Shown here: positions 11,591 through 60,961 of the stretch, in pieces
Position numbering within the stretch: the stretch's first letter is position 1
How the letters are laid out: every line of letters starts with the position of its first letter
Notes under the pieces: generated by a model
The model's input: the letters and a program-made list of their open reading frames with translations, nothing else
Database searches by the model: none
What the model was told of the DNA's origin: nothing
Assembly: GCA_002269645.1 (NCBI GenBank)
Contig: NIVC01003228.1
Coordinates: forward strand, 1 to 64,000
Direction: 5' to 3'
Length of the DNA: 64,000 bases
Source: Macrostomum lignano
Taxonomy: Eukaryota
Translations under genes and position numbers: made by a program

Positions 11591-11594
11591 AAAC

Positions 11595-19137
<7,543 letters not shown>

Positions 19138-20475
19138 GCGATGTCTGATTTGTTGTGCTAGCCATGAAATTCCCAGTCGTGGCCATAGTCAGTGGTCCAT
19201 AAACCATTTGGCTGTTGCATAAAATTTTTTAGAAAGAAATCCGAGATACAAAAAGTTTAATTCAAAATGATTAATTCAAATTCAAATTCAAATTAATTCA
19301 AAATGAAGGTGTATTAACAGACTTTGATATAAAACTATATAGAATTTAGGACTTGCACCAAGGGTATTAATAATACTTAAATGTGAAAACTAACCATAGT
19401 CCAGATTATGCTGATTGGTAGAAAGTTTTAGTACTCCTGAAATTTATGCCACATATGCCAACTTGAAAGCTTTGCTTACTATTCATACAAACAAAGAAAT
19501 CAAAGAACTTATAAAAGAAAAAATTCTTAAAGACAAGCATATATACTTGCTATAATTTATAGATAAGAATTTTCTCTATACTAGCCTTTAAAAAACATGT
19601 CAACATGAACTTTTAATTTAAAATTAAACTAACATAATTTTGCTAATATATATATAGTATATAGCTAAATTTTTATATACACTAAGCATTCCAATTTCTT
19701 TGCCAACTTCTGACATAAAACATTTGTTTAATTATGCAAAAAATTCTAGACAATGGAATATTGAATCTAAATAAGTAAATTACACTTGCATAGGCAATCA
19801 ATAAAAATTATATAAATGGATATATATTTCCAAATTTTTAATATAGATTAGCAATATGCAGCCTTAAAAGTACTAGCAATATAAAAGGTGCATGTCTAAA
19901 ATGGATACACACAAAGGTGACTATAGTTCTAATTGGCTTATCTAAGGAGAGGTAGCTTTCAATATATTTTAATATGATAGACTATTTCTAGCTACTAAGA
20001 TATAGAAAAGACCATTGTGTATATCCCTTTCGTTTCAACTATGATTTGACTATAATTAACTATAATTACCAGTTATATATATTGGTTACTATTCAAAAGC
20101 TATCTAATACTAGATAGTTTGGCAAATGAGATAAGGAGTTTGATATGGGGGAATTGATAAGAGAGCTTCCATTCCTATACCTTAATCTGTGGCCACCTTG
20201 GTCTGTCATTGTAAAATAATATTAGAAAGCAAAAAAGATTATAATAGTGAATACTATTATTTTTTCTAGAAAAATCTCTATTAAATTTTTGGGTAACACT
20301 ATATATACTTTTTGTACTTTAGTATTAATGGACAAATATGAATGTAAAAGACTGTAAAAAATATTGTATAAGATAAAATTTTCTGACTATATATGCATTA
20401 AAAGATTTTATCATTTTTAATTTTGAGATATATACCTATTGACATTGTTATATTATTAGTATTGCAAACATACAT

Positions 20476-20631: not shown

Positions 20632-21653
20632 CCAAGCATGATTGCAAATGGGATATAGAGTCAAATATATATTTAATGTACTATAATTATTAAATTAAGT
20701 TAACTGATCAGCTTGGTACAATTGGTACAATGTGCTATACATAAAAATCTATAGTTTATATTGGAGTTAGCACTTAGCAGATCTTTAAAAAATGAATGTT
20801 GCAATTTTTTATTTGAATTCTGTTTTCTGTTTTCTGAATTCTGTCCATCCATGAAATAAAACAAGCATGGATGGACGAAGGAACCTTTCAAAAAGTGATA
20901 ATGCTTGAAAGAAATGGTCAAAGGCAAATATTAGGTATATTAAAATATTACACCAAAAATATTCCATATTCTTAGCAATTGGGGGGCAATGCCTAGTAGG
21001 TCAATGTAAATAAGTTGAAAGGTTGAATACTCCAAACAGAATATGCAGAAATATCAAAATTCCACATATACTAAGCAGGGGTGTCGGAACTACTTTCAAA
21101 GTGGGGGGGCTCAATAAAAAAGGGCAGATCTGAGTTACTTCAATGCAAATCGAGGGGCAAAAATTTCAACTAATGTAAGTTCATTCATGCATTAAAAAGT
21201 AATTTAATTTCACAACAAAGTACAACCCATTACATATAGCTAATAAAACTCGTAAAATAACTATATATTTACTATTTAGTTGTGCATTTTAGTTTACACA
21301 ATGAGCAGACAGCGACAGCAGTTTAAAAAAAACAAAAATTTACAACTAATTGTACTGTACTTAGATACTCATAGAACTATACATGTATATGTAGTGGAGC
21401 AAATAAATTACTGATCATTAGAGCAATAGTTTATTGAAGTGTTGCAGGACGCAGGTATTGCATTGATTTGATGTTGACAGTACATGTAAGTTTATAGGAA
21501 TATGAAATGAACATTTGAATTTCAATTTGCTCCATTAAGCAAGTCACGTTCATATCAGATACTCGTAATGCAAAAATATATAGCAGTAGGTAGCCAGTAG
21601 TAGTAGCAAACTATGAAAACTGAATAAAAGTCAGTAGTCAGAAGCTCCAAATT

Positions 21654-24600
21654 TCACACTCTGCCAAAAAAAGTTTGCCGACGGCTGTTGCGACTTACAA
21701 ACTCGCGAACAGCTTGTGCGAGGTTCAGATTGTCAGTACGATTCTTATGCACATTAAGTAACATGAAGCTGTTGTATGTTTTGGCAGTCATAGTACTTCG
21801 CAAGTAATTCTTGATCCGTCGTTGGGCTGAAAATGACCTTTCTGCAGTGGCAGATGTCATTGGCACTACCAAGTAGACGTGCAGCATTGCAAGTACATCT
21901 CGAAAGAGCGGCTGGTGAATCTGTTCTCTTGTAAATATGTCATGCAGAGTTGTCAACCTTGAAATGAGCTTTACTTCAGGTGAACAACGCTTGACAAATC
22001 CATGCAGCAAACATAGCTGTGCTTGAAGATTGTCAGCATTCCAATCCACAGGATGGTACGCCATCAGTGATGCTGGAATAGAATTAGGTGCTGCTCCATT
22101 GGCCGCGTGAATAAGAAGCTTCTCCATGTCTTTAAGCACATTATATGCTTCCTGGTCAAATCTACTGTCTAGTTCGCGAACTAAAGCATCAATAGCGGTA
22201 TAATAATGCTGCCTGTAGTATTCTTTTACAGAGTTAGATTGATGCTGAAACGGATGCATTTTACTGCCTTCATGTTCGAGTCGTATTGGAGCCCTTCGTT
22301 CTCTTGGTAGCTTTTGTTCAATGCCGACTGCCTCTGCACCCTCGACTACTTCCTGAAACCGCTCTGAAAACATGCTTCGCTCACGCAAAAGTGCCTCTTT
22401 GAGGCAGTTTACTCCGGTGATAGTGGACTCTGCTGTGACACTAGTGCTTTGAAGAGTAATAGCCAGCTGCTCTGATAATGTAAAAATCACTCGCGCTGCG
22501 CAAATTCCAAAATAAACAGAGAACTTCATAAGGGATTTTTTCAGATCTTCTGCCTTTGATCGATTCTCTCCAGATGACTCACCAGCGATTTCGGCCAAGC
22601 AGTTAAGCAAGTGCTTGTAGCTGTGCAATACAGACGAAATTGCCTTACAACGAACACTCCATCGCGTTGGGCAGAGCATGTGAATACTGTAGCCCTGCTC
22701 TTCCTCAATAAAAAACGACTCATTCAAGGTATGAAATAGGTCAAAGCGCTTTGGAGAGGCTTTGATGAAGACAGCAGTCTCTTGTACAGTACTTAACGCG
22801 GTACTGATGACACTTGATTCTCGAGCGCACCTTTGAAGGGTCAGCTGCAGACAGTGGTTGGCACAATGAACACTCAATGCTAGTGGTTGTTCTTCTTTAA
22901 TGCGAGTTGCCGTGCCTGTCAGTCTACCACTCATACTTGCAGCACCATCATATGCTTGACCTCTTAGGTTGCTAAGCTTCAAGTTACAACGTGTTAGAAT
23001 GTCTTTTAAGGTTGAAGTAATAATTTCAGCTCCAGTTCCGCATAGTTCATGCATGCCAATGAAGTCTTCGTGCACTTGTAAATCTGGCTTTGAAACCCAC
23101 CGAATGCACACTGACATTTGTTCCTTGCAGCTTACGTCACGTGATTCATCAGCAATCAATGCGAATGTCGTTGACTTCTCACTAATGTCAAGTAACAAAC
23201 TTCGGAGAACCTGATGTGCCATGATTTCCATCATCTCTCCAATCACATCAACACTCAAGTACTTGGAATCCTTTAGCCAAGATTGCAGTTCAGGCACATC
23301 TTCAGACCTTAAAATAAGCAGCTGTCTAAGATTGCCTTCAATCTCCTTACTATTTCTTATTGCCATTCCTTGACGCATAAGATATCGCAACGAGCTAAAA
23401 ACCCGCTGCAGATTTTCCCGATTTTGTAATAGCTGTTGAGAATGAATAGCATCTAATTGTGCTCCTATTGTAGATTGTAATTTCAGTCGAGTGTACACCT
23501 TTTCGTAGGCTTCTTGGTGAAAATGACTGTTATTATGTTTCTTTAGCTTTTCAATTGCTTTCTTCCAGTCACAAAAGCCGCGAGAGGTGAATGTACTCTC
23601 TCCACAACTTCTTGATAGCTTCATGCCTGAGTTTACCGCAAAGCGACAATAAAAACAAAAAAGGGTGCCTTGAGATGAGCAGTATGTAAGCCAGTCAAAC
23701 TGCACAAACCATTGTAGTTGGCATGATCGACCTGCATTGCTGCTCCCACTCCCTCCTTGCTTGAAACCAGATATGGAATCAGGCCGATTTTGCAATGCAA
23801 TCTGGCAGCATCCGCAGTCTAACATTTCGCATGGATTAGATGTGCTAGTGCTAAGAATGGTATTTTTTGTTGCAGATACAACAGTCTCACCAACATCGGC
23901 ATTGGCAGCAGCGGCAGGGGCAGTAGGCTCTCTAGAGTCAGCATTGGCAGCGGCAGGGGCAGTAGAGTCAGCATTGGCAGCAGCGGCAGGGGCAGTAGAG
24001 TCAGCATTGGCAGCAGCGGCAGGGGCAGTAGAGTCAGCATTGGCAGCAGCGGCAGGGGCAGTAGAGTCAGCATTGGCAGCAGCGGCAGGGGCAGTAGAGT
24101 CAGCATTGGCAGCAGCGGCAGGGGCAGTAGAGTCAGCATTGGCAGCAGCGGCAGGGGCAGTAGAGTCAGCATTGGCAGCAGCGGCAGGGGCAGTAGAGTC
24201 AGCATTGGCAGCAGCGGCAGGGGCAGTAGAGTCAGCATTGGCAGCAGCGGCAGGGGCAGTAGTGTCAGCATTGGCAGCAGCGGCAGGGGCAGTAGAGTCA
24301 GCATTGGCAGCAGCGGCAGGGGCAGTAGAGTCAGCATTGGCAGCAGCGGCAGGGGCAGTAGAGTCAGCATTGGCAGCAGCGGCAGGGGCAGTAGAGTCAG
24401 CATTGGCAGCAGCGGCAGGGGCAGTAGAGTCAGCATTGGCAGCAGCGGCAGGGGCAGTAGAGTCAGCATTGGCAGCAGCGGCAGGGGCAGTAGAGTCAGC
24501 ATTGGCAGCAGCGGCAGGGGCAGTAGAGTCAGCATTGGCAGCAGCGGCAGGGGCAGTAGAGTCAGCATTGGCAGCAGCGGCAGGGGCAGTAGAGTCAGCA

Positions 24601-25035
24601 TTGGCAGCAGCGGCAGGGGCAGTAGAGTCAGCATTGGCAGCAGCGGCAGGGGCAGTAAGCTCTCTCGAGTCAGCATTGGCAGCAGCGGCAGGGGCAGTAA
24701 GCTCTCTCGAGTCAGCATTGGCAGCAGCGGCAGGGGCAGTAAGCTCTCTCGAGTCAGCATTGGCAGCAGCGGCAGGGGCAGTAAGCTCTCTCGAGTCAGC
24801 TTTAGTAGCAGCAGCTGTGCCAGATGGAGCATTCGAGTTAGCTTCAATAGGAGAAACAAGCCTAAAAAACAGCAATTAACAAGCAGCATACGAGCGTACA
24901 GCTTAATATCAACACAGTATCATATCTTCATACATTTAGATTACGTACTTACCAGTTAGTCATTTTCCTTGACTTTTTGGCTGCCTGTTTCATATCCTCT
25001 TCATGTTGTTTCTTTCTCCTTTTAGCCGTTGGCAT
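21654..25035 (-). CDS. hAT transposase (ZMYM1-like: TTF-type Zn finger, DUF4371-type core, hAT C-terminal dimerisation domain), ~1096 aa, 2 exons
   Basis: Exon 1 is 25035-24953 (MPTAKRRKK..., NLS-like), followed by a 91-nt GT-AG intron and exon 2 at 24861-21654; phases match. Motifs: WFVQFDWL..FCFYC, ADESRD, AYDGAASM, HCANH (CxxH), TRW, TAERSFS..RRIKNYLRSTM. Confidence 0.93.
23890..24800. repeat. 33/42-bp in-frame minisatellite inside the transposase
   Basis: Encodes roughly 26 copies of ADSTAPAAAAN / ADSRELTAPAAAAN. Confidence 0.95.
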
Positions 25036-26273
25036 TTTATTTTAGATTGTATTTTTCTGAAACTGATAGGTCTGTACGGCTCTGAATTTTCCCTGAAGGC
25101 TCTGAAGCCAAGCTTTTAAGCCCAGCCCAATACCAGGTGTAGTGATTCGTATAGTATTTTTTATTTAAAAGCTTTAAACACTGTCTGTCTTTCTCAGATC
25201 CCAGTAAAGTTGCTTATTTACCCACTGTCTTATTATTTCGTCCTCAGTGGACTCCCCACATTCCCCGCTCTCCACTGACCACTGGCAAGATTCATGAATG
25301 TACTGTCTATGTACATCTACGTGGGGCCCTTGCCGGTCCACTGTAGGGGGCAGGGTCAGAATCTCTGGAGTGGAGAGGGGGCAGGACAGGAAAGGAAAAC
25401 TTGAGTGCAGTCCAGTCAAGATTTAGCAATAAACAAGAGACAGAAAGGAAGGATAAGGAGTAGCGGACACTAAGCACTGTACATTCAAATCAAAGTGAAT
25501 GGTTTAACTTTAATGGATTTGGGGGTCTTGGCCCTACTTGGGTTGTGCTTATTGGGGGCAACTAAGGTCCTAGGACACAGGGCACTTAGAAAATTTACCG
25601 GGGCACTTTAAAATTTTAAAAGGGCACTTTTAAGGGTCTTTCAAAAAGTGGGGGGGCTCCAGCCCCCCCGTGCCCCCCCGGTTCCGACACCCCTGATACT
25701 AAGCGTCACAACAAATCTGTTTAGATACTAAACGCCTAAACTACTAAACTAAATTGATTGTTTCATTAATCATTAGTACGCAGACTACGCAGTATTGAGA
25801 TATAGACTCGATATTCCCGAAAGCAAAAACTTAAACCTAACCACGATAATATTGAAAGCGATAAAACAAGTTAGTTGTCTTTAACAAGCACTTTGCGCAA
25901 AAATACAGTCGTGTTTGATTGATTTCCCAATTATACTCAATTTAACTGACACAGTAAATATAAAGAATCAATTCAATTAAAAATTAAAAACGCAGTAAAC
26001 TGGAAATTGTGTTTGAGTTTTTACTTGATGATGGCCAGAGCACTGAAATTTTCTACTCAAACACGAGCCAAAAAATCCATGGAAAACGAATGTACTAAAA
26101 AAACTGAAAAATATAGACCTTAAGGCACTAACTGAAGATAAACTTTCCCAAAGCTTTAATAAAAAGAGAAATACCTAGTGCAAAGGCACCTGAAGATACA
26201 CAGAGAAATAGAACTTAGCCAAAAGCTAGAGAATCAGCAACATATTAAATTCTACACAAACGCCTATCTCTAT

Positions 26274-26580
26274 AAAAAAATCCGCAGGCCCGACCTTTCA
26301 GATTACTTTCCAGGCATATTTTGCAGTGGTTTGCGGTATTTTGCGATAGCTTTAATAGGATCGCTGTCTGTACGCTCAGAGGGCGCCTGAGGGATACCGT
26401 CAGAGCACCTTGGTACAGGTATAGGCCTGCCTTCCTATACAGCGACCCACAGCCCTTCCCGATCCACTATTACCCTCCAACCCAGCCTACTCACTCATTA
26501 CAAGCTTTCAGCCAGGCAGAGACAAGTTTCACAGGCGTACTGCGGTTAGGCGTCTCTATGCGAGACAAAACCGACACGGC
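26274..26580 (-). ncRNA. Candidate ~300-nt structured RNA of unknown family placed behind the SL-RNA promoter
   Basis: Starts exactly one array period (1152 bp) from the SL +1. Shares the SL upstream region and first 9 nt (GCCGTGTCG), then diverges. Several clean stems, GC-richer than the left flank, ends in T7. Family not recognised. Confidence 0.4.
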
Positions 26581-27139
26581 AATGAGACGAGCTGGAACCC
26601 GCTCTCACTCAGTGCACAGCTCTCCGTTGGAGCCTCCAGCCCTAGGGCAAATTATTTTGTTGAACTTTATCTACTCCAAGTAAGTTTTGCCGACTAGTGC
26701 AGCACTATTTTGCACTACAGCTTGAAAAGAGCTGCGCGAAAAAGTCTTTCTTTCTTTTAGCCGACATGTTTAGAAAGTGTGCACACAAAGGCGCCGCCTA
26801 ATTGATTGATTGATTGATTGCTATAAATCAAGTAAAATTCCCATGTGAGAGATGGAGATACTCGTAAAACTATTAATACACAGTACATATAACATAGCGT
26901 TACCGCGTGCAAATGCAAAGTGCGCATAGAAAATAATGAAACGCGAATCGAATCCCTTGCTTGACTTGATAGAGTCGAGTGGAGTGGAACTCGAAAGGAA
27001 TCAGCAGACCTATGGTAAAAATTCAAGCAGCATCCAGTTGGCGGGCGCGGGCGGATTGGTGGGCCTGGGCCTAAGTATTAATGCATGCAGCAGCTGGAGT
27101 TAGTTGATGAGCGCGCGGCATGCAGTTAAAGAGGCAAAA

Positions 27140-27259
27140 AAGACAACAGCATTTGGTATTCCCAGGCGGTCACCCATCCAAGTACTAATCAAACCCAACG
27201 TTGCTTAACTTCGGTGATCAGACGAGAACCGGTGTTTTCAACGTGGTATGGCCGTTGCC
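27140..27259 (-). rRNA. 5S: 5S rRNA, copy 1
   Basis: GGCAACGGCCATACCACGTTGAAAACACCGGTTCTCGTCTGATCACCGAAGTTAAGC...TAGTACTTGGATGGGTGACCGCCTGGGAATAC...; 120 nt, A and C boxes, T6 terminator. Confidence 0.98.
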
Positions 27260-27615
27260 ACTGGCTGATAGGAGCTGAGCTCATAATTAACCTGAACCTG
27301 CAGCTACATGTATACGGACCATACGGTACGGATCAACTGTGGGCCTCTCGTCTATACTCCAATTAATATATAATTCATTGTTGGCGCCATCAACAAAGTT
27401 GTACATGTACATATGCACATCCGCATGCATAGAGCGATCTAAGAAATTACATTTGATTATTGCAACTCGAAGAGATAGCCTGCACTGTACACCGCGATGC
27501 ATATGCGCGCTATATGATGCTACATATGCTATGGTGCAACAACTAATTTTACAACTTAAATCCAGAATTACAATTAACCAACTATAATTAGTTAATGTTG
27601 TCTTTGGCTTTGTTA

Positions 27616-27732
27616 GGCAGCCGCGGTAGCGCGGCTTGTCAAAAATTATTGAGTAGATCGCTCAATTGGATCCACGCGGTGTCTTACCATGCAAAATTAA
27701 GAGTCTTCGCAGTAAGAGACCGTCGACACGGC
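27616..27732 (-). ncRNA. Spliced-leader (SL) RNA, copy 1
   Basis: 45-nt leader GCCGTGTCGACGGTCTCTTACTGCGAAGACTCTTAATTTTGCATG ends in ATG (typical of flatworm SLs). It is followed by donor GTAAGAC paired in a stem, a second stem TGGATC/GATCTA, Sm site AATTTTTG and a 3' hairpin GCCGCG-CTAC-CGCGGC. The 3' end is approximate. Confidence 0.92.
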
Positions 27733-28291
27733 AAAGAGACGAGCTGGAACCCGCTCTCACTCAGTGCACAGCTCTCCGTTGGAGCCTCGAGCCCTAGGGC
27801 AAATTATTTTGTTGAACTTTATCTACTCCAAGTAAGTTTTGCCGACTAGTGCAGCACTATTTTGCACTACAGCTTGAAAAGAGCTGCGCGAAAAAGTCTT
27901 TCTTTCTTTTAGCCGACATGTTTAGAAAGTGTGCACACAAAGGCGCCGCCTAATTGATTGATTGATTGATTGCTATAAATCAAGTAAAATTCCCATGTGA
28001 GAGATGGAGATACTCGTAAAACTATTAATACACAGTACATATAACATAGCGTTACCGCGTGCAAATGCAAAGTGCGCATAGAAAATAATGAAACGCGAAT
28101 CGAATCCCTTGCTTGACTTGATAGAGTCGAGTGGAGTGGAACTCGAAAGGAATCAGCAGACCTATGGTAAAAATTCAAGCAGCATCCAGTTGGCGGGCGC
28201 GGGCGGATTGGTGGGCCTGGGCCTAAGTATTAATGCATGCAGCAGCTGGAGTTAGTTGATGAGCGCGCGGCATGCAGTTAAAGAGGCAAAA

Positions 28292-28411
28292 AAGACAACA
28301 GCATTTGGTATTCCCAGGCGGTCACCCATCCAAGTACTAATCAAACCCAACGTTGCTTAACTTCGGTGATCAGACGAGAACCGGTGTTTTCAACGTGGTA
28401 TGGCCGTTGCC
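28292..28411 (-). rRNA. 5S: 5S rRNA, copy 2
   Basis: Same as copy 1. Confidence 0.98.
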
Positions 28412-28767
28412 ACTGGTTGATAGGAGCTGAGCTCATAATTAACCTGAACCTGCAGCTACATGTATACGGACCATACGGTACGGATCAACTGTGGGCCTCT
28501 CGTCTATACTCCAATTAATATATAATTCATTGTTGGCGCCATCAACAAAGTTGTACATGTACATATGCACATCCGCATGCATAGAGCGATCTAAGAAATT
28601 ACATTTGATTATTGCAACTCGAAGAGATAGCCTGCACTGTACACCGCGATGCATATGCGCGCTATATGATGCTATATATGCTATGGTGCAACAACTAATT
28701 TTACAACTTAAATCCAGAATTACAATTAACCAACTATAATTAGTTAATGTTGTCTTTGGCTTTGTTA

Positions 28768-28884
28768 GGCAGCCGCGGTAGCGCGGCTTGTCACAAATTA
28801 TTGAGTAGATCGCTCAATTGGATCCACGCGGTGTCTTACCATGCAAAATTAAGAGTCTTCGCAGTAAGAGACCGTCGACACGGC
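28768..28884 (-). ncRNA. SL RNA, copy 2 (Sm-site variant AATTTGTG)
   Basis: As copy 1 except an a>c change at 28794. Confidence 0.9.
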
Positions 28885-29443
28885 AAAGAGACGAGCTGGA
28901 ACCCGCTCTCACTCAGTGCACAGCTCTCCGTTGGAGCCTCGAGCCCTAGGGCAAATTATTTTGTTGAACTTTATCTACTCCAAGTAAGTTTTGCCGACTA
29001 GTGCAGCACTATTTTGCACTACAGCTTGAAAAGAGCTGCGCGAAAAAGTCTTTCTTTCTTTTAGCCGACATGTTTAGAAAGTGTGCACACAAAGGCGCCG
29101 CCTAATTGATTGATTGATTGATTGCTATAAATCAAGTAAAATTCCCATGTGAGAGATGGAGATACTCGTAAAACTATTAATACACAGTACATATAACATA
29201 GCGTTACCGCGTGCAAATGCAAAGTGCGCATAGAAAATAATGAAACGCGAATCGAATCCCTTGCTTGACTTGATAGAGTCGAGTGGAGTGGAACTCGAAA
29301 GGAATCAGCAGACCTATGGTAAAAATTCAAGCAGCATCCAGTTGGCGGGCGCGGGCGGATTGGTGGGCCTGGGCCTAAGTATTAATGCATGCAGCAGCTG
29401 GAGTTAGTTGATGAGCGCGCGGCATGCAGTTAAAGAGGCAAAA

Positions 29444-29563
29444 AAGACAACAGCATTTGGTATTCCCAGGCGGTCACCCATCCAAGTACTAATCAAACCC
29501 AACGTTGCTTAACTTCGGTGATCAGACGAGAACCGGTGTTTTCAACGTGGTATGGCCGTTGCC
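29444..29563 (-). rRNA. 5S: 5S rRNA, copy 3
   Basis: Same as copy 1. Confidence 0.98.
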
Positions 29564-29919
29564 ACTGGCTGATAGGAGCTGAGCTCATAATTAACCTGAA
29601 CCTGCAGCTACATGTATACGGACCATACGGTACGGATCAACTGTGGGCCTCTCGTCTATACTCCAATTAATATATAATTCATTGTTGGCGCCATCAACAA
29701 AGTTGTACATGTACATATGCACATCCGCATGCATAGAGCGATCTAAGAAATTACATTTGATTATTGCAACTCGAAGAGATAGCCTGCACTGTACACCGCG
29801 ATGCATATGCGCGCTATATGATGCTATATATGCTATGGTGCAACAACTAATTTTACAACTTAAATCCAGAATTACAATTAACCAACTATAATTAGTTAAT
29901 GTTGTCTTTGGCTTTGTTA

Positions 29920-30036
29920 GGCAGCCGCGGTAGCGCGGCTTGTCAAAAATTATTGAGTAGATCGCTCAATTGGATCCACGCGGTGTCTTACCATGCAAAA
30001 TTAAGAGTCTTCGCAGTAAGAGACCGTCGACACGGC
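29920..30036 (-). ncRNA. SL RNA, copy 3
   Basis: Same as copy 1. Confidence 0.92.
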
Positions 30037-30595
30037 AAAGAGACGAGCTGGAACCCGCTCTCACTCAGTGCACAGCTCTCCGTTGGAGCCTCGAGCCCTA
30101 GGGCAAATTATTTTGTTGAACTTTATCTACTCCAAGTAAGTTTTGCCGACTAGTGCAGCACTATTTTGCACTACAGCTTGAAAAGAGCTGCGCGAAAAAG
30201 TCTTTCTTTCTTTTAGCCGACATGTTTAGAAAGTGTGCACACAAAGGCGCCGCCTAATTGATTGATTGATTGATTGCTATAAATCAAGTAAAATTCCCAT
30301 GTGAGAGATGGAGATACTCGTAAAACTATTAATACACAGTACATATAACATAGCGTTACCGCGTGCAAATGCAAAGTGCGCATAGAAAATAATGAAACGC
30401 GAATCGAATCCCTTGCTTGACTTGATAGAGTCGAGTGGAGTGGAACTCGAAAGGAATCAGCAGACCTATGGTAAAAATTCAAGCAGCATCCAGTTGGCGG
30501 GCGCGGGCGGATTGGTGGGCCTGGGCCTAAGTATTAATGCATGCAGCAGCTGGAGTTAGTTGATGAGCGCGCGGCATGCAGTTAAAGAGGCAAAA

Positions 30596-30715
30596 AAGAC
30601 AACAGCATTTGGTATTCCCAGGCGGTCACCCATCCAAGTACTAATCAAACCCAACGTTGCTTAACTTCGGTGATCAGACGAGAACCGGTGTTTTCAACGT
30701 GGTATGGCCGTTGCC
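30596..30715 (-). rRNA. 5S: 5S rRNA, copy 4
   Basis: Same as copy 1. Confidence 0.98.
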
Positions 30716-31071
30716 ACTGGCTGATAGGAGCTGAGCTCATAATTAACCTGAACCTGCAGCTACATGTATACGGACCATACGGTACGGATCAACTGTGGGC
30801 CTCTCGTCTATACTCCAATTAATATATAATTCATTGTTGGCGCCATCAACAAAGTTGTACATGTACATATGCACATCCGCATGCATAGAGCGATCTAAGA
30901 AATTACATTTGATTATTGCAACTCGAAGAGATAGCCTGCACTGTACACCGCGATGCATATGCGCGCTATATGATGCTACATATGCTATGGTGCAACAACT
31001 AATTTTACAACTTAAATCCAGAATTACAATTAACCAACTATAATTAGTTAATGTTGTCTTTGGCTTTGTTA

Positions 31072-31188
31072 GGCAGCCGCGGTAGCGCGGCTTGTCAAAA
31101 ATTATTGAGTAGATCGCTCAATTGGATCCACGCGGTGTCTTACCATGCAAAATTAAGAGTCTTCGCAGTAAGAGACCGTCGACACGGC
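31072..31188 (-). ncRNA. SL RNA, copy 4
   Basis: Same as copy 1. Confidence 0.92.
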
Positions 31189-31747
31189 AAAGAGACGAGC
31201 TGGAACCCGCTCTCACTCAGTGCACAGCTCTCCGTTGGAGCCTCGAGCCCTAGGGCAAATTATTTTGTTGAACTTTATCTACTCCAAGTAAGTTTTGCCG
31301 ACTAGTGCAGCACTATTTTGCACTACAGCTTGAAAAGAGCTGCGCGAAAAAGTCTTTCTTTCTTTTAGCCGACATGTTTAGAAAGTGTGCACACAAAGGC
31401 GCCGCCTAATTGATTGATTGATTGATTGCTATAAATCAAGTAAAATTCCCATGTGAGAGATGGAGATACTCGTAAAACTATTAATACACAGTACATATAA
31501 CATAGCGTTACCGCGTGCAAATGCAAAGTGCGCATAGAAAATAATGAAACGCGAATCGAATCCCTTGCTTGACTTGATAGAGTCGAGTGGAGTGGAACTC
31601 GAAAGGAATCAGCAGACCTATGGTAAAAATTCAAGCAGCATCCAGTTGGCGGGCGCGGGCGGATTGGTGGGCCTGGGCCTAAGTATTAATGCATGCAGCA
31701 GCTGGAGTTAGTTGATGAGCGCGCGGCATGCAGTTAAAGAGGCAAAA

Positions 31748-31867
31748 AAGACAACAGCATTTGGTATTCCCAGGCGGTCACCCATCCAAGTACTAATCAA
31801 ACCCAACGTTGCTTAACTTCGGTGATCAGACGAGAACCGGTGTTTTCAACGTGGTATGGCCGTTGCC
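31748..31867 (-). rRNA. 5S: 5S rRNA, copy 5
   Basis: Same as copy 1. Confidence 0.98.
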
Positions 31868-32223
31868 ACTGGCTGATAGGAGCTGAGCTCATAATTAACC
31901 TGAACCTGCAGCTACATGTATACGGACCATACGGTACGGATCAACTGTGGGCCTCTCGTCTATACTCCAATTAATATATAATTCATTGTTGGCGCCATCA
32001 ACAAAGTTGTACATGTACATATGCACATCCGCATGCATAGAGCGATCTAAGAAATTACATTTGATTATTGCAACTCGAAGAGATAGCCTGCACTGTACAC
32101 CGCGATGCATATGCGCGCTATATGATGCTACATATGCTATGGTGCAACAACTAATTTTACAACTTAAATCCAGAATTACAATTAACCAACTATAATTAGT
32201 TAATGTTGTCTTTGGCTTTGTTA

Positions 32224-32340
32224 GGCAGCCGCGGTAGCGCGGCTTGTCAAAAATTATTGAGTAGATCGCTCAATTGGATCCACGCGGTGTCTTACCATGC
32301 AAAATTAAGAGTCTTCGCAGTAAGAGACCGTCGACACGGC
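32224..32340 (-). ncRNA. SL RNA, copy 5
   Basis: Same as copy 1. Confidence 0.92.
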
Positions 32341-32899
32341 AAAGAGACGAGCTGGAACCCGCTCTCACTCAGTGCACAGCTCTCCGTTGGAGCCTCGAGC
32401 CCTAGGGCAAATTATTTTGTTGAACTTTATCTACTCCAAGTAAGTTTTGCCGACTAGTGCAGCACTATTTTGCACTACAGCTTGAAAAGAGCTGCGCGAA
32501 AAAGTCTTTCTTTCTTTTAGCCGACATGTTTAGAAAGTGTGCACACAAAGGCGCCGCCTAATTGATTGATTGATTGATTGCTATAAATCAAGTAAAATTC
32601 CCATGTGAGAGATGGAGATACTCGTAAAACTATTAATACACAGTACATATAACATAGCGTTACCGCGTGCAAATGCAAAGTGCGCATAGAAAATAATGAA
32701 ACGCGAATCGAATCCCTTGCTTGACTTGATAGAGTCGAGTGGAGTGGAACTCGAAAGGAATCAGCAGACCTATGGTAAAAATTCAAGCAGCATCCAGTTG
32801 GCGGGCGCGGGCGGATTGGTGGGCCTGGGCCTAAGTATTAATGCATGCAGCAGCTGGAGTTAGTTGATGAGCGCGCGGCATGCAGTTAAAGAGGCAAAA

Positions 32900-33019
32900 A
32901 AGACAACAGCATTTGGTATTCCCAGGCGGTCACCCATCCAAGTACTAATCAAACCCAACGTTGCTTAACTTCGGTGATCAGACGAGAACCGGTGTTTTCA
33001 ACGTGGTATGGCCGTTGCC
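32900..33019 (-). rRNA. 5S: 5S rRNA, copy 6
   Basis: Same as copy 1. Confidence 0.98.
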
Positions 33020-33375
33020 ACTGGCTGATAGGAGCTGAGCTCATAATTAACCTGAACCTGCAGCTACATGTATACGGACCATACGGTACGGATCAACTGT
33101 GGGCCTCTCGTCTATACTCCAATTAATATATAATTCATTGTTGGCGCCATCAACAAAGTTGTACATGTACATATGCACATCCGCATGCATAGAGCGATCT
33201 AAGAAATTACATTTGATTATTGCAACTCGAAGAGATAGCCTGCACTGTACACCGCGATGCATATGCGCGCTATATGATGCTATATATGCTATGGTGCAAC
33301 AACTAATTTTACAACTTAAATCCAGAATTACAATTAACCAACTATAATTAGTTAATGTTGTCTTTGGCTTTGTTA

Positions 33376-33492
33376 GGCAGCCGCGGTAGCGCGGCTTGTC
33401 AAAAATTATTGAGTAGATCGCTCAATTGGATCCACGCGGTGTCTTACCATGCAAAATTAAGAGTCTTCGCAGTAAGAGACCGTCGACACGGC
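33376..33492 (-). ncRNA. SL RNA, copy 6
   Basis: Same as copy 1. Confidence 0.92.
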
Positions 33493-34051
33493 AAAGAGAC
33501 GAGCTGGAACCCGCTCTCACTCAGTGCACAGCTCTCCGTTGGAGCCTCGAGCCCTAGGGCAAATTATTTTGTTGAACTTTATCTACTCCAAGTAAGTTTT
33601 GCCGACTAGTGCAGCACTATTTTGCACTACAGCTTGAAAAGAGCTGCGCGAAAAAGTCTTTCTTTCTTTTAGCCGACATGTTTAGAAAGTGTGCACACAA
33701 AGGCGCCGCCTAATTGATTGATTGATTGATTGCTATAAATCAAGTAAAATTCCCATGTGAGAGATGGAGATACTCGTAAAACTATTAATACACAGTACAT
33801 ATAACATAGCGTTACCGCGTGCAAATGCAAAGTGCGCATAGAAAATAATGAAACGCGAATCGAATCCCTTGCTTGACTTGATAGAGTCGAGTGGAGTGGA
33901 ACTCGAAAGGAATCAGCAGACCTATGGTAAAAATTCAAGCAGCATCCAGTTGGCGGGCGCGGGCGGATTGGTGGGCCTGGGCCTAAGTATTAATGCATGC
34001 AGCAGCTGGAGTTAGTTGATGAGCGCGCGGCATGCAGTTAAAGAGGCAAAA

Positions 34052-34171
34052 AAGACAACAGCATTTGGTATTCCCAGGCGGTCACCCATCCAAGTACTAA
34101 CCAAACCCAACGTTGCTTAACTTCGGTGATCAGACGAGAACCGGTGTTTTCAATGTGGTATGGCCGTGGCC
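34052..34171 (-). rRNA. 5S: 5S rRNA, copy 7 (variant class)
   Basis: Three substitutions relative to copies 1-6: A4C, G18A, A71G. Confidence 0.96.
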
Positions 34172-34527
34172 ACTGGCTGATAGGAGCTGAGCTCATAATT
34201 AACCTGAACCTGCAGCTACATGTATACGGACCATACGGTACGGATCAATTGTTGGCCTCTCGTCTATACTCCAATTAATATATAATTCATTGTTGGCGCC
34301 ATCAACAAAGTTGTACATGTACATATGCACATCCGCATGCATAGAGCGATCTAAGAAATTACATTTGATTATTGCAACTCGAAGAGATAGCCTGCACTGT
34401 ACACCGCGATGCATATGCGCGCTATATGATGCTATATATGCTATGGTGCAACAACTAATTTTACAACTTAAATCCAGAATTACAATTAACCAACTATAAT
34501 TAGTTAATGTTGTCTTTGGCTTTGTTA

Positions 34528-34644
34528 GGCAGCCGCGGTAGCGCGGCTTGTCAAAAATTATTGAGTAGATCGCTCAATTGGATCCACGCGGTGTCTTACC
34601 ATGCAAAATTAAGAGTCTTCGCAGTAAGAGACCGTCGACACGGC
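34528..34644 (-). ncRNA. SL RNA, copy 7
   Basis: Same as copy 1. Confidence 0.92.
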
Positions 34645-35203
34645 AAAGAGACGAGCTGGAACCCGCTCTCACTCAGTGCACAGCTCTCCGTTGGAGCCTC
34701 GAGCCCTAGGGCAAATTATTTTGTTGAACTTTATCTACTCCAAGTAAGTTTTGCCGACTAGTGCAGCACTATTTTGCACTACAGCTTGAAAAGAGCTGCG
34801 CGAAAAAGTCTTTCTTTCTTTTAGCCGACATGTTTAGAAAGTGTGCACACAAAGGCGCCGCCTAATTGATTGATTGATTGATTGCTATAAATCAAGTAAA
34901 ATTCCCATGTGAGAGATGGAGATACTCGTAAAACTATTAATACACAGTACATATAACATAGCGTTACCGCGTGCAAATGCAAAGTGCGCATAGAAAATAA
35001 TGAAACGCGAATCGAATCCCTTGCTTGACTTGATAGAGTCGAGTGGAGTGGAACTCGAAAGGAATCAGCAGACCTATGGTAAAAATTCAAGCAGCATCCA
35101 GTTGGCGGGCGCGGGCGGATTGGTGGGCCTGGGCCTAAGTATTAATGCATGCAGCAGCTGGAGTTAGTTGATGAGCGCGCGGCATGCAGTTAAAGAGGCA
35201 AAA

Positions 35204-35323
35204 AAGACAACAGCATTTGGTATTCCCAGGCGGTCACCCATCCAAGTACTAACCAAACCCAACGTTGCTTAACTTCGGTGATCAGACGAGAACCGGTGTT
35301 TTCAATGTGGTATGGCCGTGGCC
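35204..35323 (-). rRNA. 5S: 5S rRNA, copy 8 (variant class)
   Basis: Same three substitutions as copy 7. Confidence 0.96.
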
Positions 35324-35800
35324 ACTGGCTGATAGGAGCTGAGCTCATAATTAACCTGAACCTGCAGCTACATGTATACGGACCATACGGTACGGATCAA
35401 TTGTTGGCCTCTCGTCTATACTCCAATGAATATATAATTAGTAATGCGGACGGATTACCGCGCTCGTAGTATATAGTAACTATAGTGGTGATTTGCAGTC
35501 AAGTCAAAGTCAACCTAACTAGCTCAACGCAAACAGTAACGCGTAGTCCAGTTTGACTCTATAATTCATTGTTGGCGCCATCAACAAAGTTGTACATATG
35601 CACATCCGCATGCATAGAGCGATCTAAGAAATTACATTTGATTATTGCAACTCGAAGAGATAGCCTGCACTGTACACCGCGATGCATATGCGCGCTATAT
35701 GATGCTATATGTGCTATGGTGCAACAACTAATTTTACAACTTAAATCCAGAATTACAATTAACCAACTATAATTAGTTAATGTTGTCTTTGGCTTTGTTA

Positions 35801-35824
35801 GGCAGCCGCGGTAGCGCGGCTTGT
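35801..35824 (-). pseudogene. Truncated SL RNA remnant (3' hairpin only) at the array edge
   Basis: GGCAGCCGCGGTAGCGCGGCTTGT, then array homology stops before the Sm site. Confidence 0.85.
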
Positions 35825-35863
35825 TAAACGTGTGTTTGTTTTACCAACGAATACATAAGGCAC

Positions 35864-36361
35864 ATGACACAACTCCTTGTTCATTTTTCCAGACGTGTGG
35901 ACATCCGTGGCGTCATTGACACGGTGGAGGAACCATCACCTATCATTACGAAACAAGGGAAGAAGGTTCATCGTGCCCGGTTAACCATTATTGATAATTC
36001 TGCTGCCTCCGTCTCCCTCATATTCTGGGGATCGTCCTCCGACCGGATAAATCAGTATCAGCACGGAGAATGCCTCGCCTTCATGAGAGGAGTGCTACAA
36101 GAGTACCCGGCTGGTACATTGCAAGTTGATTGTACTCATGCTCGAATACAGAAGCTGCAAGAGTATGAGGCAACCCAGCTGGACAATTGTGTGCGAGAAG
36201 CCAAACTACTGGGCACTAACTTCGAAGTCGCTTCGGTCTCACAGATAGAGACAACAGACCTTGCTAACTCGACTCAGCATACGCCAATCCGGTCAAGTCT
36301 CTATGCAAGTATTCAACCCGGAGGTGACAAGTTACACGTCGAGTTTAAGTTTGGCTCTTAA
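35864..36361 (+). CDS. RPA70-like OB-fold (ssDNA-binding) exon, probably transposon (Helitron-like) cargo
   Basis: VDIRGVIDTVEEPSPIITKQGKKVHRARLTIIDNSAASVSLIFWG resembles the RPA1 DBD-B pattern (VD..GV......I..K.G......L.L.D.S...V.LT.WG); likely acceptor TTTTTCCAG at 35892; 5' part not seen. Confidence 0.65.
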   Translation: MTQLLVHFSRRVDIRGVIDTVEEPSPIITKQGKKVHRARLTIIDNSAASVSLIFWGSSSDRINQYQHGECLAFMRGVLQEYPAGTLQVDCTHARIQKLQEYEATQLDNCVREAKLLGTNFEVASVSQIETTDLANSTQHTPIRSSLYASIQPGGDKLHVEFKFGS

Positions 36362-37728: not shown

Positions 37729-38455
37729 CACGTTTAAAAGCAAACCGTTTGACCAATTTTCTCCATTTTTTTACCAACTTGTAGGAAATTCAACAGAGAT
37801 GGTATGATTAGTGTTAGTCTAGACAAATTGACAAGTCAAGTCATAATTGCAAGCGAAAAGAGGTGAGGAAACGATAGCCCATAGGCAAACCTGTTTATTG
37901 ATAATAAGCGTACGGTAGGGCAGGTGCAACGATAATATTCAATCAATAATATTTGGGGTTAAAAGCATGCACAAATGTGCAAGTACAAATCTGAATATGA
38001 TAGGGCATAGAAATAGCGCACGAAGTAAACGAGAGAGAGAAAGAGACAAGTGCGGCATGCACTCACTGAGCAAAGCTACAAACACAAACCCAACAATTAG
38101 TTTTTGGTATGTTTTCGTCAATGTTAAGTACCTGTAAAAGGTTAAAAACAGGTGTTTTCCCTATCTAATCCAATGTATTTTCTTCTAAGTTAGAAAGTTA
38201 TATAGTCTATGGCTGATGCATGCTGTTTATAACGAAAATCTGGGCGTATGCAAATTTCGCCTAAAATTCCTAAGATTAGAGGAGAAAGTATGATGTATTT
38301 TTAAATGGTAAAGAGCTTTCTTTAAAAAGGTATTTCTCTATCTAATCTATTCTTAATAGTCTACGGCTGATGCTGCTTTTTAAAGAATTTTATATACATA
38401 GGATCCTATTCTAGAGTTCCTTTTTACGTACTACTACCCTTAATCTCATCATTAG

Positions 38456-57167: not shown

Positions 57168-60100
57168 TTACTGCAGTTTCAGGGTCACCCGGTGTAGCTC
57201 GGGCAGCAGGCGGACTCCGGGCACGGAGAAGATGGACGCCGCTGATGAGGTCGAAAATGAGAGACAGAAACTTTGTTTCTCTTGTGAGATAAAATTGAGA
57301 TCTGATAAAGTTTTTTGCTACGGATTTTTTGCACGCACCGGCAAAAGCGTGTCTGTGTACTTTAGTCACAGTAGTGCAGAGGTACAAGCGTGTCTGTGTA
57401 CTTTAGTCACAGTAGTGCAGAGGTACAAGCGTGTCTGTGTACTTTAGTCACAGTAGTGCAGAGGTACAAGCGTGTCTGTGTACTTTAGTCACAGTAGTGC
57501 AGAGGTACAAGCGTGTCTGTGTACTTTAGTCACAGTAGTGCAGAGGCACAAGCGTGTCTGTGTACTTTTGTCACAATAGTGCAGAGGCACAAGCGCAAGC
57601 TTTAGCTGGTACAAGAGCACGGGAAAAACTGCTAAGCTCTGGCAAAAGCGCGAAATTTTGCATGTTTATTTCTCCTCAGACTCGTCATCATGCCGTGCTC
57701 AGTCAGTCTCAGCCCGCCTGTAACTATGTAACACCTCTAACTATGCACTTCTGTCATTGTGCACCTCTGTCACTGCGCACCTCCGTCACTATGCATGTCA
57801 TTGTGCACCTCTGTCACTGCGCACCTCCGTCACTATGCATGTCATTGTGCACCTCTGTCACGGTGGGAAACGGTGCACCTCTGTCACTATGCACCTCAGC
57901 CGCTACTTAAAAATGTACTGCAAAACAATGAGCTCCCGTCTCGGCAATGCCCTTTTCAGAAAATTCTAGCTTTCAATTAAACTTTCTTTAACTTTGAAGT
58001 GCTTATTGACTACCAGCGGTCCTTGTCGCGGTGAAATCAAGAGAGCAGTGCCCAGTGCTCACCGGGGTCCAGGCACACCAGCTCTGCCGGCAGGCTGTGA
58101 AAGAAGGCGTGTCGAAGCGCGGCCGCCGCCGTCAGCCGCCTCTGCGGCCGCAGCTGCAGGCAGGCCAGTGCCAGGGCCTCGGCATGCGCCACGGATTGAA
58201 GCCGCGGTGCCGACTGCCGCAGGCGGTGGGCCACCCGGGCGTCCGGGGCGGACTGCTCCGGCCGGCCCGTCACCTGAGTATCAGGGGTCAAGTCCGGTTA
58301 AGACAAGTCCAAGGACTTTCTCTCTTAGGTCCAAGTTCTAATCAACGAGACTAAAGTCAGGCCGGGTCAGGCCGGGTCAGGCCGGGTCAGGCCGGGTCAG
58401 GCCGGGTCAGGCCGGGTCAGGCCGGGTCAGGCCGGGTCAGGCCGGGTCAGGCCGGGTCAGGCCGGGTCAGGCCGGGTCAGGCCGGGTCAGGCCGGGTCAG
58501 GCCGGGTCAGGCCGGGTCAGGCCGGGTCAGGCCGGGTCAGGCCGGGTCAGGCCGGGTCAGGCCGGGTCAGGCCGGGTCAGGCCGGGTCAGGCCGGGTCAG
58601 GCCGGGTCAGGCCGGGTCAGGCCGGGTCAGGCCGGGTCAGGCCGGGTCAGGCCGGGTCAGGCCGGGTCAGGCCGGGTCAGGCCGGGTCAGGCCGGGTCAG
58701 GCCGGGTCAGGCCGGGTCAGGCCGGGTCAGGCCGGGTCAGGCCGGGTCAGGCCGGGTCAGGCCGGGTCAGGCCGGGTCAGGCCGGGTCAGGCCGGGTCAG
58801 GCCGGGTCAGGCCGGGTCAGGCCGGGTCAGGCCGGGTCAGGCCGGGTCAGGCCGGGTCAGGCCGGGTCAGGCCGGGTCAGGCCGGGTCAGGCCGGGTCAG
58901 GCCGGGTCAGGCCGGGTCAGGCCGGGTCAGGCCGGGTCAGGCCGGGTCAGGCCGGGTCAGGCCGGGTCAGGCCGGGTCAGGCCGGGTCAGGCCGGGTCAG
59001 GCCGGGTCAGGCCGGGTCAGGCCGGGTCAGGCCGGGTCAGGCCGGGTCAGGCCGGGTCAGGCCGGGTCAGGCCGGGTCAGGCCGGGTCAGGCCGGGTCAG
59101 GCCGGGTCAGGCCGGGTCAGGCCGGGTCAGGCCGGGTCAGGCCGGGTCAGGCCGGGTCAGGCCGGGTCAGGCCGGGTCAGGCCGGGTCAGTCCGGGTCAG
59201 GCCGGGTCAGGCCGGGTCAGGCCGGGTCAGGCCGGGTCAGGCCGGGTCAGGCCGGGTCAGGCCGGGTCAGGCCGGGTCAGGCCGGGTCAGGCCGGGTCAG
59301 GCCATACAATCAGCCTCCGTCATCGCAGCGCCTCACCCTGAAGATCTCCTCCAGCTGGTCCTCGGCGCTGTGCGCCCCCGGGAACAGAGCGGCCCCGGAC
59401 AGCATCTCGGCGTGGATGCAGCCGACGGCCCACATGTCCAGCGAGGCGGAGTATCGAGTGCCACCCAGCAGCACCTCGGGCGGACGATACCACAGCGTGA
59501 CGATCTCGGAGCTGTAGCTGCGGCTCGGCACCGTCTGAGCCCTGGCCAGGCCGAAGTCGGCCAGCTTGAGCTCCCCGATAGCCGAGATGAGGAGATTTTG
59601 CGGCTTCAAATCCCGGTGCAGTATGCGCCTGCGGTGGCAGAACTCGAGGCCTCGGAGCAGTTGGAATAAAAATAGCTAAGCAGGGAGGTCATCAGATTTT
59701 GGAGATTGATTTGGATTTAGATGTGTCAATAGATGCAGCAGGTCCCTGGGTGTGTATATAGATGCAGCAGGTCCCTGGGTGTGTCTATAGATGCAGCAGG
59801 TCCCTGGGTGTGTCTATAGATGCAGCAGGTCCCTGGGTGTGTCTATAGATGCAGCAGGTCCCTGGGTGTGTCTATAGATGCAGTAGGTCCCTAATACGAG
59901 TAGCTGTGTCGCTAGCTTGGATTATACAGACACTAGATCAGTCCTATGTCTATTTTTGTCTATTACAAAATGATAGTACAGTTAGGCCGTACCTTTGCGT
60001 TGTGGGCCCTGAGCCCTCCGGAGTGCTTCTCCAGGTATTTGCTGAGGTCCTGCGGCTGCATTCGTACAGTCGGGGTTGTGTTGTGTTGCTGCTTGCATTA

Positions 60101-60961
60101 ATTTGAGATTGTCAACAGGGCAATAAAGTTATTAAACCCACTCACCACGTATTCGAACACGAAGGTCAAATTCATCTCCGTGTGTATGATGTCGTGCAGT
60201 GTGACTATGTTTGCGTGCTTTAAGCCTTTCAGCAGGGAGGCTGGAATAAAAAAACCCCATAGTTCCTGAGACACTACTTGAGGCAGGCTCTAGCAAGTAG
60301 CAAATGCGGCGCGTTTTGCCTGTTTTTTCTCACCTTCCCTGATGGCAGTGAACGGAGCGCCCTCCTCGCGTTGCAGTCGAATGTCTTTCAGAGCCACGAT
60401 CGAGTTGTTCACTCTTGAATGCAAATGGGAGTGCAGATCACAATTATCGCTAACACATTACTAAGCTCCCGAGTTCGAGTCGGCGGCGCGGCCACTCTTG
60501 GATGGAGAATCATACAAGAGAGGTCAAGGGGTCATCTGCCCCATCCCGTGGAAATAAGGGGAGGGGTCACGTTTGCTGGAAAATTCACGCCTGCGGCGCT
60601 AAAAAAGCTAAAATATTATGGTCAGTGGGGCTCTTGCCGCCCCAGTCACCAGCCAAGGCAAAGCTTTCAGCGGGCACCCACCGAGACACGCCTTTAAAGA
60701 CGGTGGCGTAGCTGCCCTCGCCGAGCACCTCCAGCCGCTGGTACGAGTCCGACCTGCCGAATCCGCAGCACTCGCCGCCTCCGCAGTCAAGGGCGGACCT
60801 GGGTCGGCGGACGGCCGCAGTCTTCTGCTTCTGCGCGGCGGCATTGCTGCCTGAGGCAGCCTCGGGTGATGCCGGCTGAATGGTGACGGCTGACGCGGCT
60901 GCGGCTGCCACGCTGCCGGCTGAGCGGTGCCGGCGGAGCGGCTGGCCGAGGCGGGCGAAGG
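57168..60961 (-). CDS. CDK14: PFTAIRE-family cyclin-dependent kinase (CDK14/15, Eip63E-like), 7 coding exons identified, 5' end incomplete
   Basis: Exons: 60961-60682, 60413-60334, 60240-60146, 60055-59993, 59675-59337, 58273-58063, 57241-57168. All are GT-AG with consistent phases. Motifs: [57 protein letters not shown]. Candidate upstream exon at 63633-63495. Confidence 0.94.
57346..57597. repeat. 41-bp minisatellite in the last CDK intron
   Basis: GTGTCTGTGTACTTTAGTCACAGTAGTGCAGAGGTACAAGC, ~6 copies. Confidence 0.93.
58357..59303. repeat. 10-bp minisatellite (~94 copies) in a CDK intron
   Basis: (GCCGGGTCAG)n, almost perfect. Confidence 0.98.
59728..59892. repeat. 29-bp minisatellite in a CDK intron
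   Basis: ATAGATGCAGCAGGTCCCTGGGTGTGTCT in tandem. Confidence 0.92.

Follow-up and report, generated by a model that had tools for sequence, protein, structure and literature searches.

The window analysed here, a stretch of 64,000 nucleotides from the flatworm Macrostomum lignano (contig NIVC01003228.1, positions 1 to 64,000, assembly GCA_002269645.1), contains a tandem array in which 5S ribosomal RNA (rRNA) genes and spliced-leader (SL) RNA-type genes share one repeat unit. Positions 1595-29146 of the window are 100% identical, over 27,552 bp and without any shift of coordinates, to NIVC01003228.1 (109,796 bp). The array is a real, head-to-tail composite of 5S and SL genes. We consider it probable that it constitutes a minor locus of M. 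lignano, whose SL gene has diverged from its canonical sister but kept its parts intact; this gene is probably transcribed and would donate leaders to a minor extent at most. About 30% of the genes of M. lignano, which serves as a transgenic model of regeneration, are trans-spliced, with an enrichment among stem-cell genes (PMC8629364). Moreover, the linkage of SL and 5S genes has served as an argument for an easy origin of SL RNAs from small nuclear RNA (snRNA) genes that enter 5S arrays (PMC4233971), and a flatworm example adds a phylum to this recurrent association.

Architecture of the 5S-SL array

The array occupies positions 26572-35828 on the minus strand with a period of 1152 bp, and contains 8 full-length 5S rRNA genes and 7 complete SL RNA genes, all on that strand. 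BLAST of one unit against the window revealed eight consecutive unit copies, as present in the assembled scaffold (Mlig_3_7), with a unit-to-unit identity of 99.3-100%; the 5S and the SL gene lie within one repeat unit that is reiterated head to tail, i.e., they form a linked tandem repeat. Read along the minus strand, the 5S gene takes up unit positions 1-119 and is followed directly by TTTTT, by a 560-bp spacer and by the 45-nt SL exon at 680-724. The SL gene is then separated from the next 5S gene by a spacer of about 355 bp, and an AT-rich TTAATTATGAG motif is located about 30 nt upstream of the 5S gene. An earlier note on this DNA had proposed the same counts, period, strand and coordinates, as well as the pairing of an RNA polymerase III-type 5S gene with an SL-RNA-type gene on the same strand of a single unit, and all of these were borne out by Rfam, BLAST and the matches to the leader core. 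The E-value scan of the whole unit against Rfam returned 5S only and no further RNA family, while four reading frames of the unit, looked up by exact match, hit no other contigs.

Eight matches to the Rfam family RF00001 were found on the minus strand, each covering model positions 1-120 of 120 with 108.9-114.7 bits (gathering score 38) and at an exact spacing of 1152 bp. In the consensus unit the gene ends in ...GCTGTTGTCT, and the TTTTT after it is a run of T of the RNA polymerase III terminator type. The copies in units U1 and U2, at the right edge of the array, score about 6 bits lower than the other copies, and by our reading of the Rfam alignment their changes A4C and G18A would break base pairs. 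When the frame antisense to 5S served as the query in a protein search, only 5S-derived frames of other eukaryotes were retrieved, with at most 91% identity over about half of the query and none from Macrostomum.

The differences among the units sit in ordered blocks (U1+U2; U3, U4+U7). Near-identity prevails among the inner units, and divergence is greater at the edge, where the neighbours U1 and U2 have single-base variants in common. These observations bear on whether the array may be an assembly artefact, either a larger 5S-SL array collapsed to eight units or unrelated sequences joined in the PacBio assembly. Collapse is common in tandem arrays, a large 5S cluster of M. lignano is visible by fluorescence in situ hybridisation (FISH), the units differ at few bases, and the unit count is that of the assembly, a point that tells against our reading. 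However, unique sequence borders the array on either side within one scaffold, its length is only 9.3 kb, which long reads are expected to span, and its variants form ordered blocks. Furthermore, two paralogous scaffolds are collinear with its left flank, and in one of them a homologous 5S unit occupies the corresponding place, while the unit of the main 5S cluster has a different length (1645-bp amplicon). We thus regard an artefact as improbable.

The SL gene and its canonical counterpart

The 22-nt leader core CGGTCTCTTACTGCGAAGACTC has exactly 7 minus-strand matches in the window, at the 1152-bp period, while 0 would be expected by chance even at 3 mismatches. The 45-nt exon (GCCGTGTCGACGGTCTCTTACTGCGAAGACTCTTAATTTTGCATG) ends in ...TTTTGCATG, that is, in a terminal AUG followed by a GUAAG (GTAAG) donor, and passes into the donor stem GTAAGACACCG in 7/7 copies. 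The donor stem is followed by two further hairpins and by a consensus Sm site, situated between the hairpins, which reads AAUUUUUGA in 6 copies and AAUUUGUGA in 1. The latter arises from a T-to-G change at window position 28776 (unit U6, unit position 770), which leaves a valid Sm site that resembles the one in human U1 snRNA.

The SL RNA would be about 115-120 nt long. For the variant RNA of about 120 nt a three-hairpin fold of -40.9 kcal/mol is predicted (z = -4.5), and none of 200 shuffles folds as well (0/200). A further predicted helix, in the variant and the canonical RNA alike, pairs leader nt 5-10 with nt 91-96 beside the Sm site (e.g., window 30032-30027 with 29946-29941); it overlaps the Sm site. 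The two RNAs differ in this helix in a complementary manner, by three double changes (variant UGUCGA/UUGACA, canonical UAAAGA/UUUUUA) in a comparison of only two sequences, and exchanging the 5' ends of variant and canonical removes the predicted helix. Rfam holds no flatworm SL family, and neither its gathering-score scan nor the E-value scan of the unit gave an SL match; the identity of the gene as SL rests here on published leaders and on an environmental contig described below (L003). As judged from its sequence, the variant SL gene carries every part required for trans-splicing.

The published leader of M. lignano is CGGTCTCTTACTGCGAAGACTCAATTTATTGCATG (PMC8629364), and that of M. cliftonense, 45 nt in length, is GCCGTAAAGACGGTCTCTTACTGCGAAGACTCAATTTATTGCATG; the M. 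hystrix leader lacks two bases of it but otherwise agrees (PMC10468722, suppl. Table S3). Compared with the M. cliftonense leader, the variant exon is identical at 37/45 positions without gaps and differs at 8, while it agrees with the M. lignano leader at 30/35 positions, so that it is not the published leader. A 23-nt core is common to the variant and the canonical leaders of M. lignano, M. cliftonense and M. hystrix, and the first five bases of the 45-nt exon are also unchanged. The variant has GTCG where the canonical leader has AAAG, and CTTAATTTTGC where the canonical has CAATTTATTGC; the stretch that tells the two leaders apart is GACTCTTAATTTTGCATG in the variant vs. GACTCAATTTATTGCATG in the canonical leader. 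The proposal of the earlier note that the exon is a spliced leader therefore holds in part: its 45-nt length agrees with that of the M. cliftonense leader (PMC10468722), but it is a variant and not the leader known from Macrostomum messenger RNAs (mRNAs), and is thus only a putative spliced leader.

Scanning of JGI metagenome contigs with the core matched two contigs. The first one, L003 (JGI Ga0302322_100095745), is a 3,076-bp genomic contig with a canonical SL gene at 607-720, the exon of which is 45/45 identical to that of M. cliftonense. The start-site sequence CTCTTTGCCGT, the donor stem and the three-hairpin fold are common to L003 and the array gene. The canonical Macrostomum gene and the array gene are alike in the 45-nt exon, the identical 23-nt core, the sequence at the start, the donor stem, the three hairpins and the placement of the Sm site before the last hairpin, whereas they differ in the sequences of hairpins 2 and 3 and in the Sm site, AAUUUUUGA in the array and GUAUUUUUAG in the canonical gene. 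The canonical SL RNA gene of M. lignano has been reported to be 109 bp long (PMC8629364). An intron-free frame of 382 codons (1774-2922), a candidate that looks like a Na/K-ATPase beta subunit, follows about 1 kb downstream of the SL gene in L003. The second contig, L002 (JGI Ga0316592_1034293), is mRNA-like: its nt 1-40 begin with the canonical leader, which leads into a glycine-rich, zinc-knuckle-like frame, and it looks like trans-splicing caught in an environmental sample.

On these comparisons the canonical leader is conserved across the genus, with the array gene as a diverged sister of the canonical SL gene. There is no 5S gene within the 3,076 bp of L003, and hence at least one Macrostomum SL gene is unlinked to 5S; linkage to 5S is not a general property of the SL genes of this genus. 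Given that both linked and unlinked SL genes occur within Macrostomum, gain and loss of the linkage can be studied directly in the genus.

A probable minor locus and its history

The primers employed for 5S FISH in M. lignano match the array 5S exactly, and the array unit would yield a product of about 1147 bp. The same primers amplify a product of 1645 bp from the main terminal 5S cluster on chromosome 2 (PMC5704211, PMC7013459), and the difference in size suggests that the array is a minor locus. Regarding the SL genes, eight copies have been reported in a deduplicated assembly of M. lignano, in a search requiring a 100% match to the canonical 35-nt leader (PMC8629364). No match to that leader is present in the array, which Ustyantsev and Berezikov would therefore have missed; the canonical SL genes are situated elsewhere in the genome.

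It could be argued that the array is the principal locus of both SL and 5S, with the variant being the true main leader of the sequenced line, since the number of reported SL gene copies (PMC8629364) equals that of the array units. However, that search demanded the canonical sequence, which is absent here, one and the same canonical leader is found in M. lignano, M. cliftonense, M. hystrix and the two environmental contigs (one of them mRNA-like, starting with it), the main 5S unit is of a different size and the dominance of the canonical leader has already been published. Such a role for the array is hardly credible, and we think that the array SL genes are not the main source of the known leader. 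The earlier note had left the choice between a small orphon cluster and a collapsed larger array; a small orphon cluster fits better than the main locus.

M. lignano has several near-identical copies of the region. The paralogous scaffolds share 99.2% identity in the exons and 88-96% in the non-coding DNA around them. Much of the latter figure is due to long 19-bp tandem repeats located downstream of the DYRK2-like kinase gene of the window and to GT-rich microsatellites in its introns (about 9600-11600 and 13400-15200). A third DYRK copy, on NIVC01000755.1 (L005), has one intact 5S gene about 9.5 kb upstream and in the same orientation, and the flanks of this 5S gene are 93.7% identical to the array unit. 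As this value falls within the 88-96% of the surrounding non-coding DNA, 5S sequence was present at the locus before the copies diverged. There is no SL core in L005, where the homology ends about 117 nt before the expected start of the SL gene. The lone 5S gene is either what is left of the same locus or a form of it that has not expanded.

The L005 unit includes the 120-bp segment (L005 149-278) otherwise found in U1 only, as well as G71, otherwise found only in U1 and U2, and its homology to the array begins exactly at the start of this segment. The segment either was present ancestrally and has been deleted from the inner units, or represents a small insertion of some age. Resemblance to the L005 paralog is greater in the edge units of the array than in the inner ones. 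Divergence at the edges is what is usually seen where homogenisation is most effective towards the centre of an array. Scaffold NIVC01002916.1 (L001) does not qualify as an 'empty' copy of the locus: comparison with L005 shows that L001 stops about 4 kb short of the expected 5S position and is thus uninformative here.

Array ends and genomic context

Both ends of the array fall inside the SL gene, and given that this gene makes up about 10% of the unit, two random breaks would do so with a chance of about 1%. No transposon was found that would account for both ends. A retrotransposon of the SLACS/CZAR/NeSL type was considered as their cause and rejected, because there is no SL remainder beyond the break and no reverse-transcriptase domain in the flanking frames scanned. 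In addition, self-BLAST of the flanks revealed no repeated element enclosing the array. On the left side the flank runs into a region collinear with two paralogous scaffolds, and only 530 bp of unassigned sequence lie between the array end and this collinear DNA.

The array had been described in the earlier note as lying between two ordinary kinase genes. Both genes are real, but they are not its direct neighbours, as a hAT transposon and frames with RPA OB-fold and OTU domains intervene (Table 1). The immediate setting of the array is transposon-rich DNA. The hAT element is complete: it is bordered by terminal inverted repeats (CAGGGGTGTCGGAAC) and an 8-bp target duplication (ATACTAAG), and its transposase frame of 1073 codons, with DUF4371 and a hAT dimerisation domain, is intact. 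Its insertion site is empty in NIVC01002916.1, indicating a recent insertion, and the element may still be active. Within the transposase frame, positions 24000-24783 consist of a 33-bp unit repeated 22.9 times at 98% identity; the frame stays open through the repeat, which produces a 'mucin-like' Pfam match. To the right of the array, the RPA-like frame is followed by an OTU protease frame at 38371-39021 on the plus strand and, farther right, by a THAP frame. We take the pairing of RPA OB-fold and OTU to be typical of Helitron-type transposons; a Rep/helicase domain was not found by these frames. A protein search with the RPA-like frame gave no relatives, and exact look-ups of ten right-flank frames gave no matches.

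Table 1. Coordinates of the array, its genes and neighbouring features (positions in the window unless another scaffold is named).
Feature	Position	Strand	Remarks
Whole tandem array	26572..35828	-	8 x 1152 bp + 120-bp extra segment - 79 nt missing from one SL gene; both flanks unique
5S rRNA gene, unit U1	35205..35323	-	Edge copy; A4C, G18A, G71; Rfam 108.9 bits
5S rRNA gene, unit U2	34053..34171	-	A4C, G18A, G71 as in U1; Rfam 108.9 bits
5S rRNA gene, unit U3	32901..33019	-	Rfam 114.7 bits
5S rRNA gene, unit U4	31749..31867	-	Rfam 114.7 bits
5S rRNA gene, unit U5	30597..30715	-	Rfam; TTTTT directly after
5S rRNA gene, unit U6	29445..29563	-	Rfam
5S rRNA gene, unit U7	28293..28411	-	Rfam
5S rRNA gene, unit U8 (last unit)	27141..27259	-	Rfam
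Variant SL RNA gene, copy 1	34526..34644	-	45-nt exon 34644-34600, then donor GTAAG; 3' end approximate
Variant SL RNA gene, copy 2	33374..33492	-	Core match, unit alignment
Variant SL RNA gene, copy 3	32222..32340	-	Core match, unit alignment
Variant SL RNA gene, copy 4	31070..31188	-	Core match, unit alignment
Variant SL RNA gene, copy 5	29918..30036	-	Core match, unit alignment
Variant SL RNA gene, copy 6	28766..28884	-	Sm site AAUUUGUGA, not AAUUUUUGA
Variant SL RNA gene, copy 7	27614..27732	-	Core match, unit alignment
Eighth SL gene, stump at left array end	26572..26580	-	Exon nt 1-9 only (GCCGTGTCG), intact upstream region before it
SL gene 3' fragment at right array end	35802..35828	-	Last hairpin, caagccgcgctaccgcggctgcc; starts at about nt 95
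120-bp segment, edge unit U1 only	35440..35559	-	AATTAT repeats at borders; interrupts rightmost unit copy (BLAST)
Solitary 5S gene in paralog	L005 400-518 (NIVC01000755.1, about 211,996-212,114)	Same orientation as DYRK	Rfam 116.5 bits
hAT transposon	21076..25695	-	4620 bp; between array and DYRK2-like gene
RPA OB-fold reading frame	35864..36361	+	Begins 36 bp from right array end
DYRK2-like kinase gene BOX15_Mlig003918g2	11598..19146	-	Exons match M. lignano proteins at 99-100%; 7.4 kb from array
CDK-like kinase gene, exons	59313..60457	-	About 23.5 kb from array

Transcription, maintenance and possible use of the variant leader

Beyond the observed anatomy of the array, the variant status of its leader, the features of its genes and the state of its paralog, we infer the polymerases, the homogenisation and the expression as follows. 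From what is generally known of such genes, 5S would be read by RNA polymerase III from its internal promoter, stopping at the run of T, while the SL gene would be read separately from an upstream promoter of its own, as in snRNA genes. Unequal crossing-over and gene conversion would copy the whole unit, keeping 5S and SL together, and such copying would render the inner units near-identical and leave the edge units different. The locus would be older than the duplication that gave rise to the paralogous scaffolds, with one paralog having shrunk to a single 5S gene without SL.

A number of points weigh against the view that the variant is a working SL gene. Only a single leader has been reported from transcript analyses of M. 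lignano, and thus the variant may not be used (PMC8629364; PMC12582326). The locus is small and decaying at its edges, and the near-identity of the units reflects recent homogenisation, so that it is uninformative on selection. Finally, upstream of the start site the best similarity between the array and the canonical gene is 18/28 nt at about -100 to -75, which is weak, as 42/1000 shuffles equal it; a conserved SL promoter block at about -100, although convincing by eye, was rejected on this ground.

It is accordingly conceivable, although we lean towards the opposite, that the array is a dead orphon, real as DNA, with its variant SL genes and perhaps these 5S genes too being silent and kept uniform by recombination, while the leaders of mRNAs come from canonical genes elsewhere. 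That several transcriptome studies reported one leader only would agree with this, as would the uninformative unit identity, a short array cut at both ends inside the SL gene and surrounded by transposon-derived sequence, the decay of the paralog to a lone 5S gene and the lower-scoring 5S copies at the edge. However, the functional elements of the SL gene are intact in 7/7 copies, including the Sm site, the donor and a predicted fold as stable as that of the canonical gene, and the complementary difference between the 5' extension and the Sm side also speaks against silence, with the reservation that only two sequences were compared. We therefore prefer to see the array SL as probably transcribed and at most a minor leader donor.

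A stronger claim seems to us rather unlikely, namely that M. lignano possesses a second functional leader, for which this 5S-linked array and related loci would be the only source and which would serve certain cells or part of the mRNAs. Such a leader could have been overlooked, since earlier work searched for the canonical one at 100% identity. If it were used, it would affect annotation and read trimming, it might mark a separate class of transcripts, and the linkage of SL to 5S would also exist in Platyhelminthes. If it is unused, the array is an ordinary orphon that matters mainly for repeat annotation.

Comparison with known systems

The 5S-SL arrangement itself is known from nematodes, Hydra, copepods, Oikopleura, kinetoplastids, Euglena and dinoflagellates, and SL genes have been described as 'often ... 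close to 5S rRNA genes' in the introduction to SLFinder (PMC7346339). Hydra, copepods, Oikopleura, kinetoplastids, Euglena and dinoflagellates show the same pairing as our array in other phyla, none of them Platyhelminthes, and with unrelated leaders. Copepods have both SL-only and 5S-linked arrays (PMC4664967). As for flatworms, full-text searches of the open-access literature on Macrostomum, flatworms and Platyhelminthes found no report of 5S-SL linkage, in agreement with the novelty for macrostomids suggested by the earlier note.

Tandem SL repeats of flatworms include the 595-nt SL unit of Schistosoma mansoni, the 920-bp unit of Opisthorchis felineus with >300 copies and the SL clusters of cestodes. 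They resemble the array in that the leader ends in AUG and in their tandem organisation and concerted evolution (PMC2770079, PMC6530080, PMC12582326), but 5S has not been reported as part of these repeats. For S. mansoni, a separate count of 5S genes gave 21 copies, four of them in a 3-kb cluster.

A close likeness in layout is offered by C. elegans and C. briggsae, for which a 5S ribosomal DNA-SL1 unit of about 1 kb is described (Krause & Hirsh 1987; Nelson & Honda 1989; cited in PMC7986045, PMC12582326). According to a preprint, the two genes of the nematode unit are read by different polymerases (bioRxiv 10.64898/2026.01.07.698080). As in our array, one 5S and one SL gene are found per tandem unit of about 1 kb and are homogenised together. 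In nematodes the array comprises about 110 copies, serves as the main source of SL1 and carries the two genes in opposite directions. The M. lignano array differs in having eight copies, both genes on one strand, a variant SL and the position of a minor locus, and the leaders of the two systems are unrelated in sequence.

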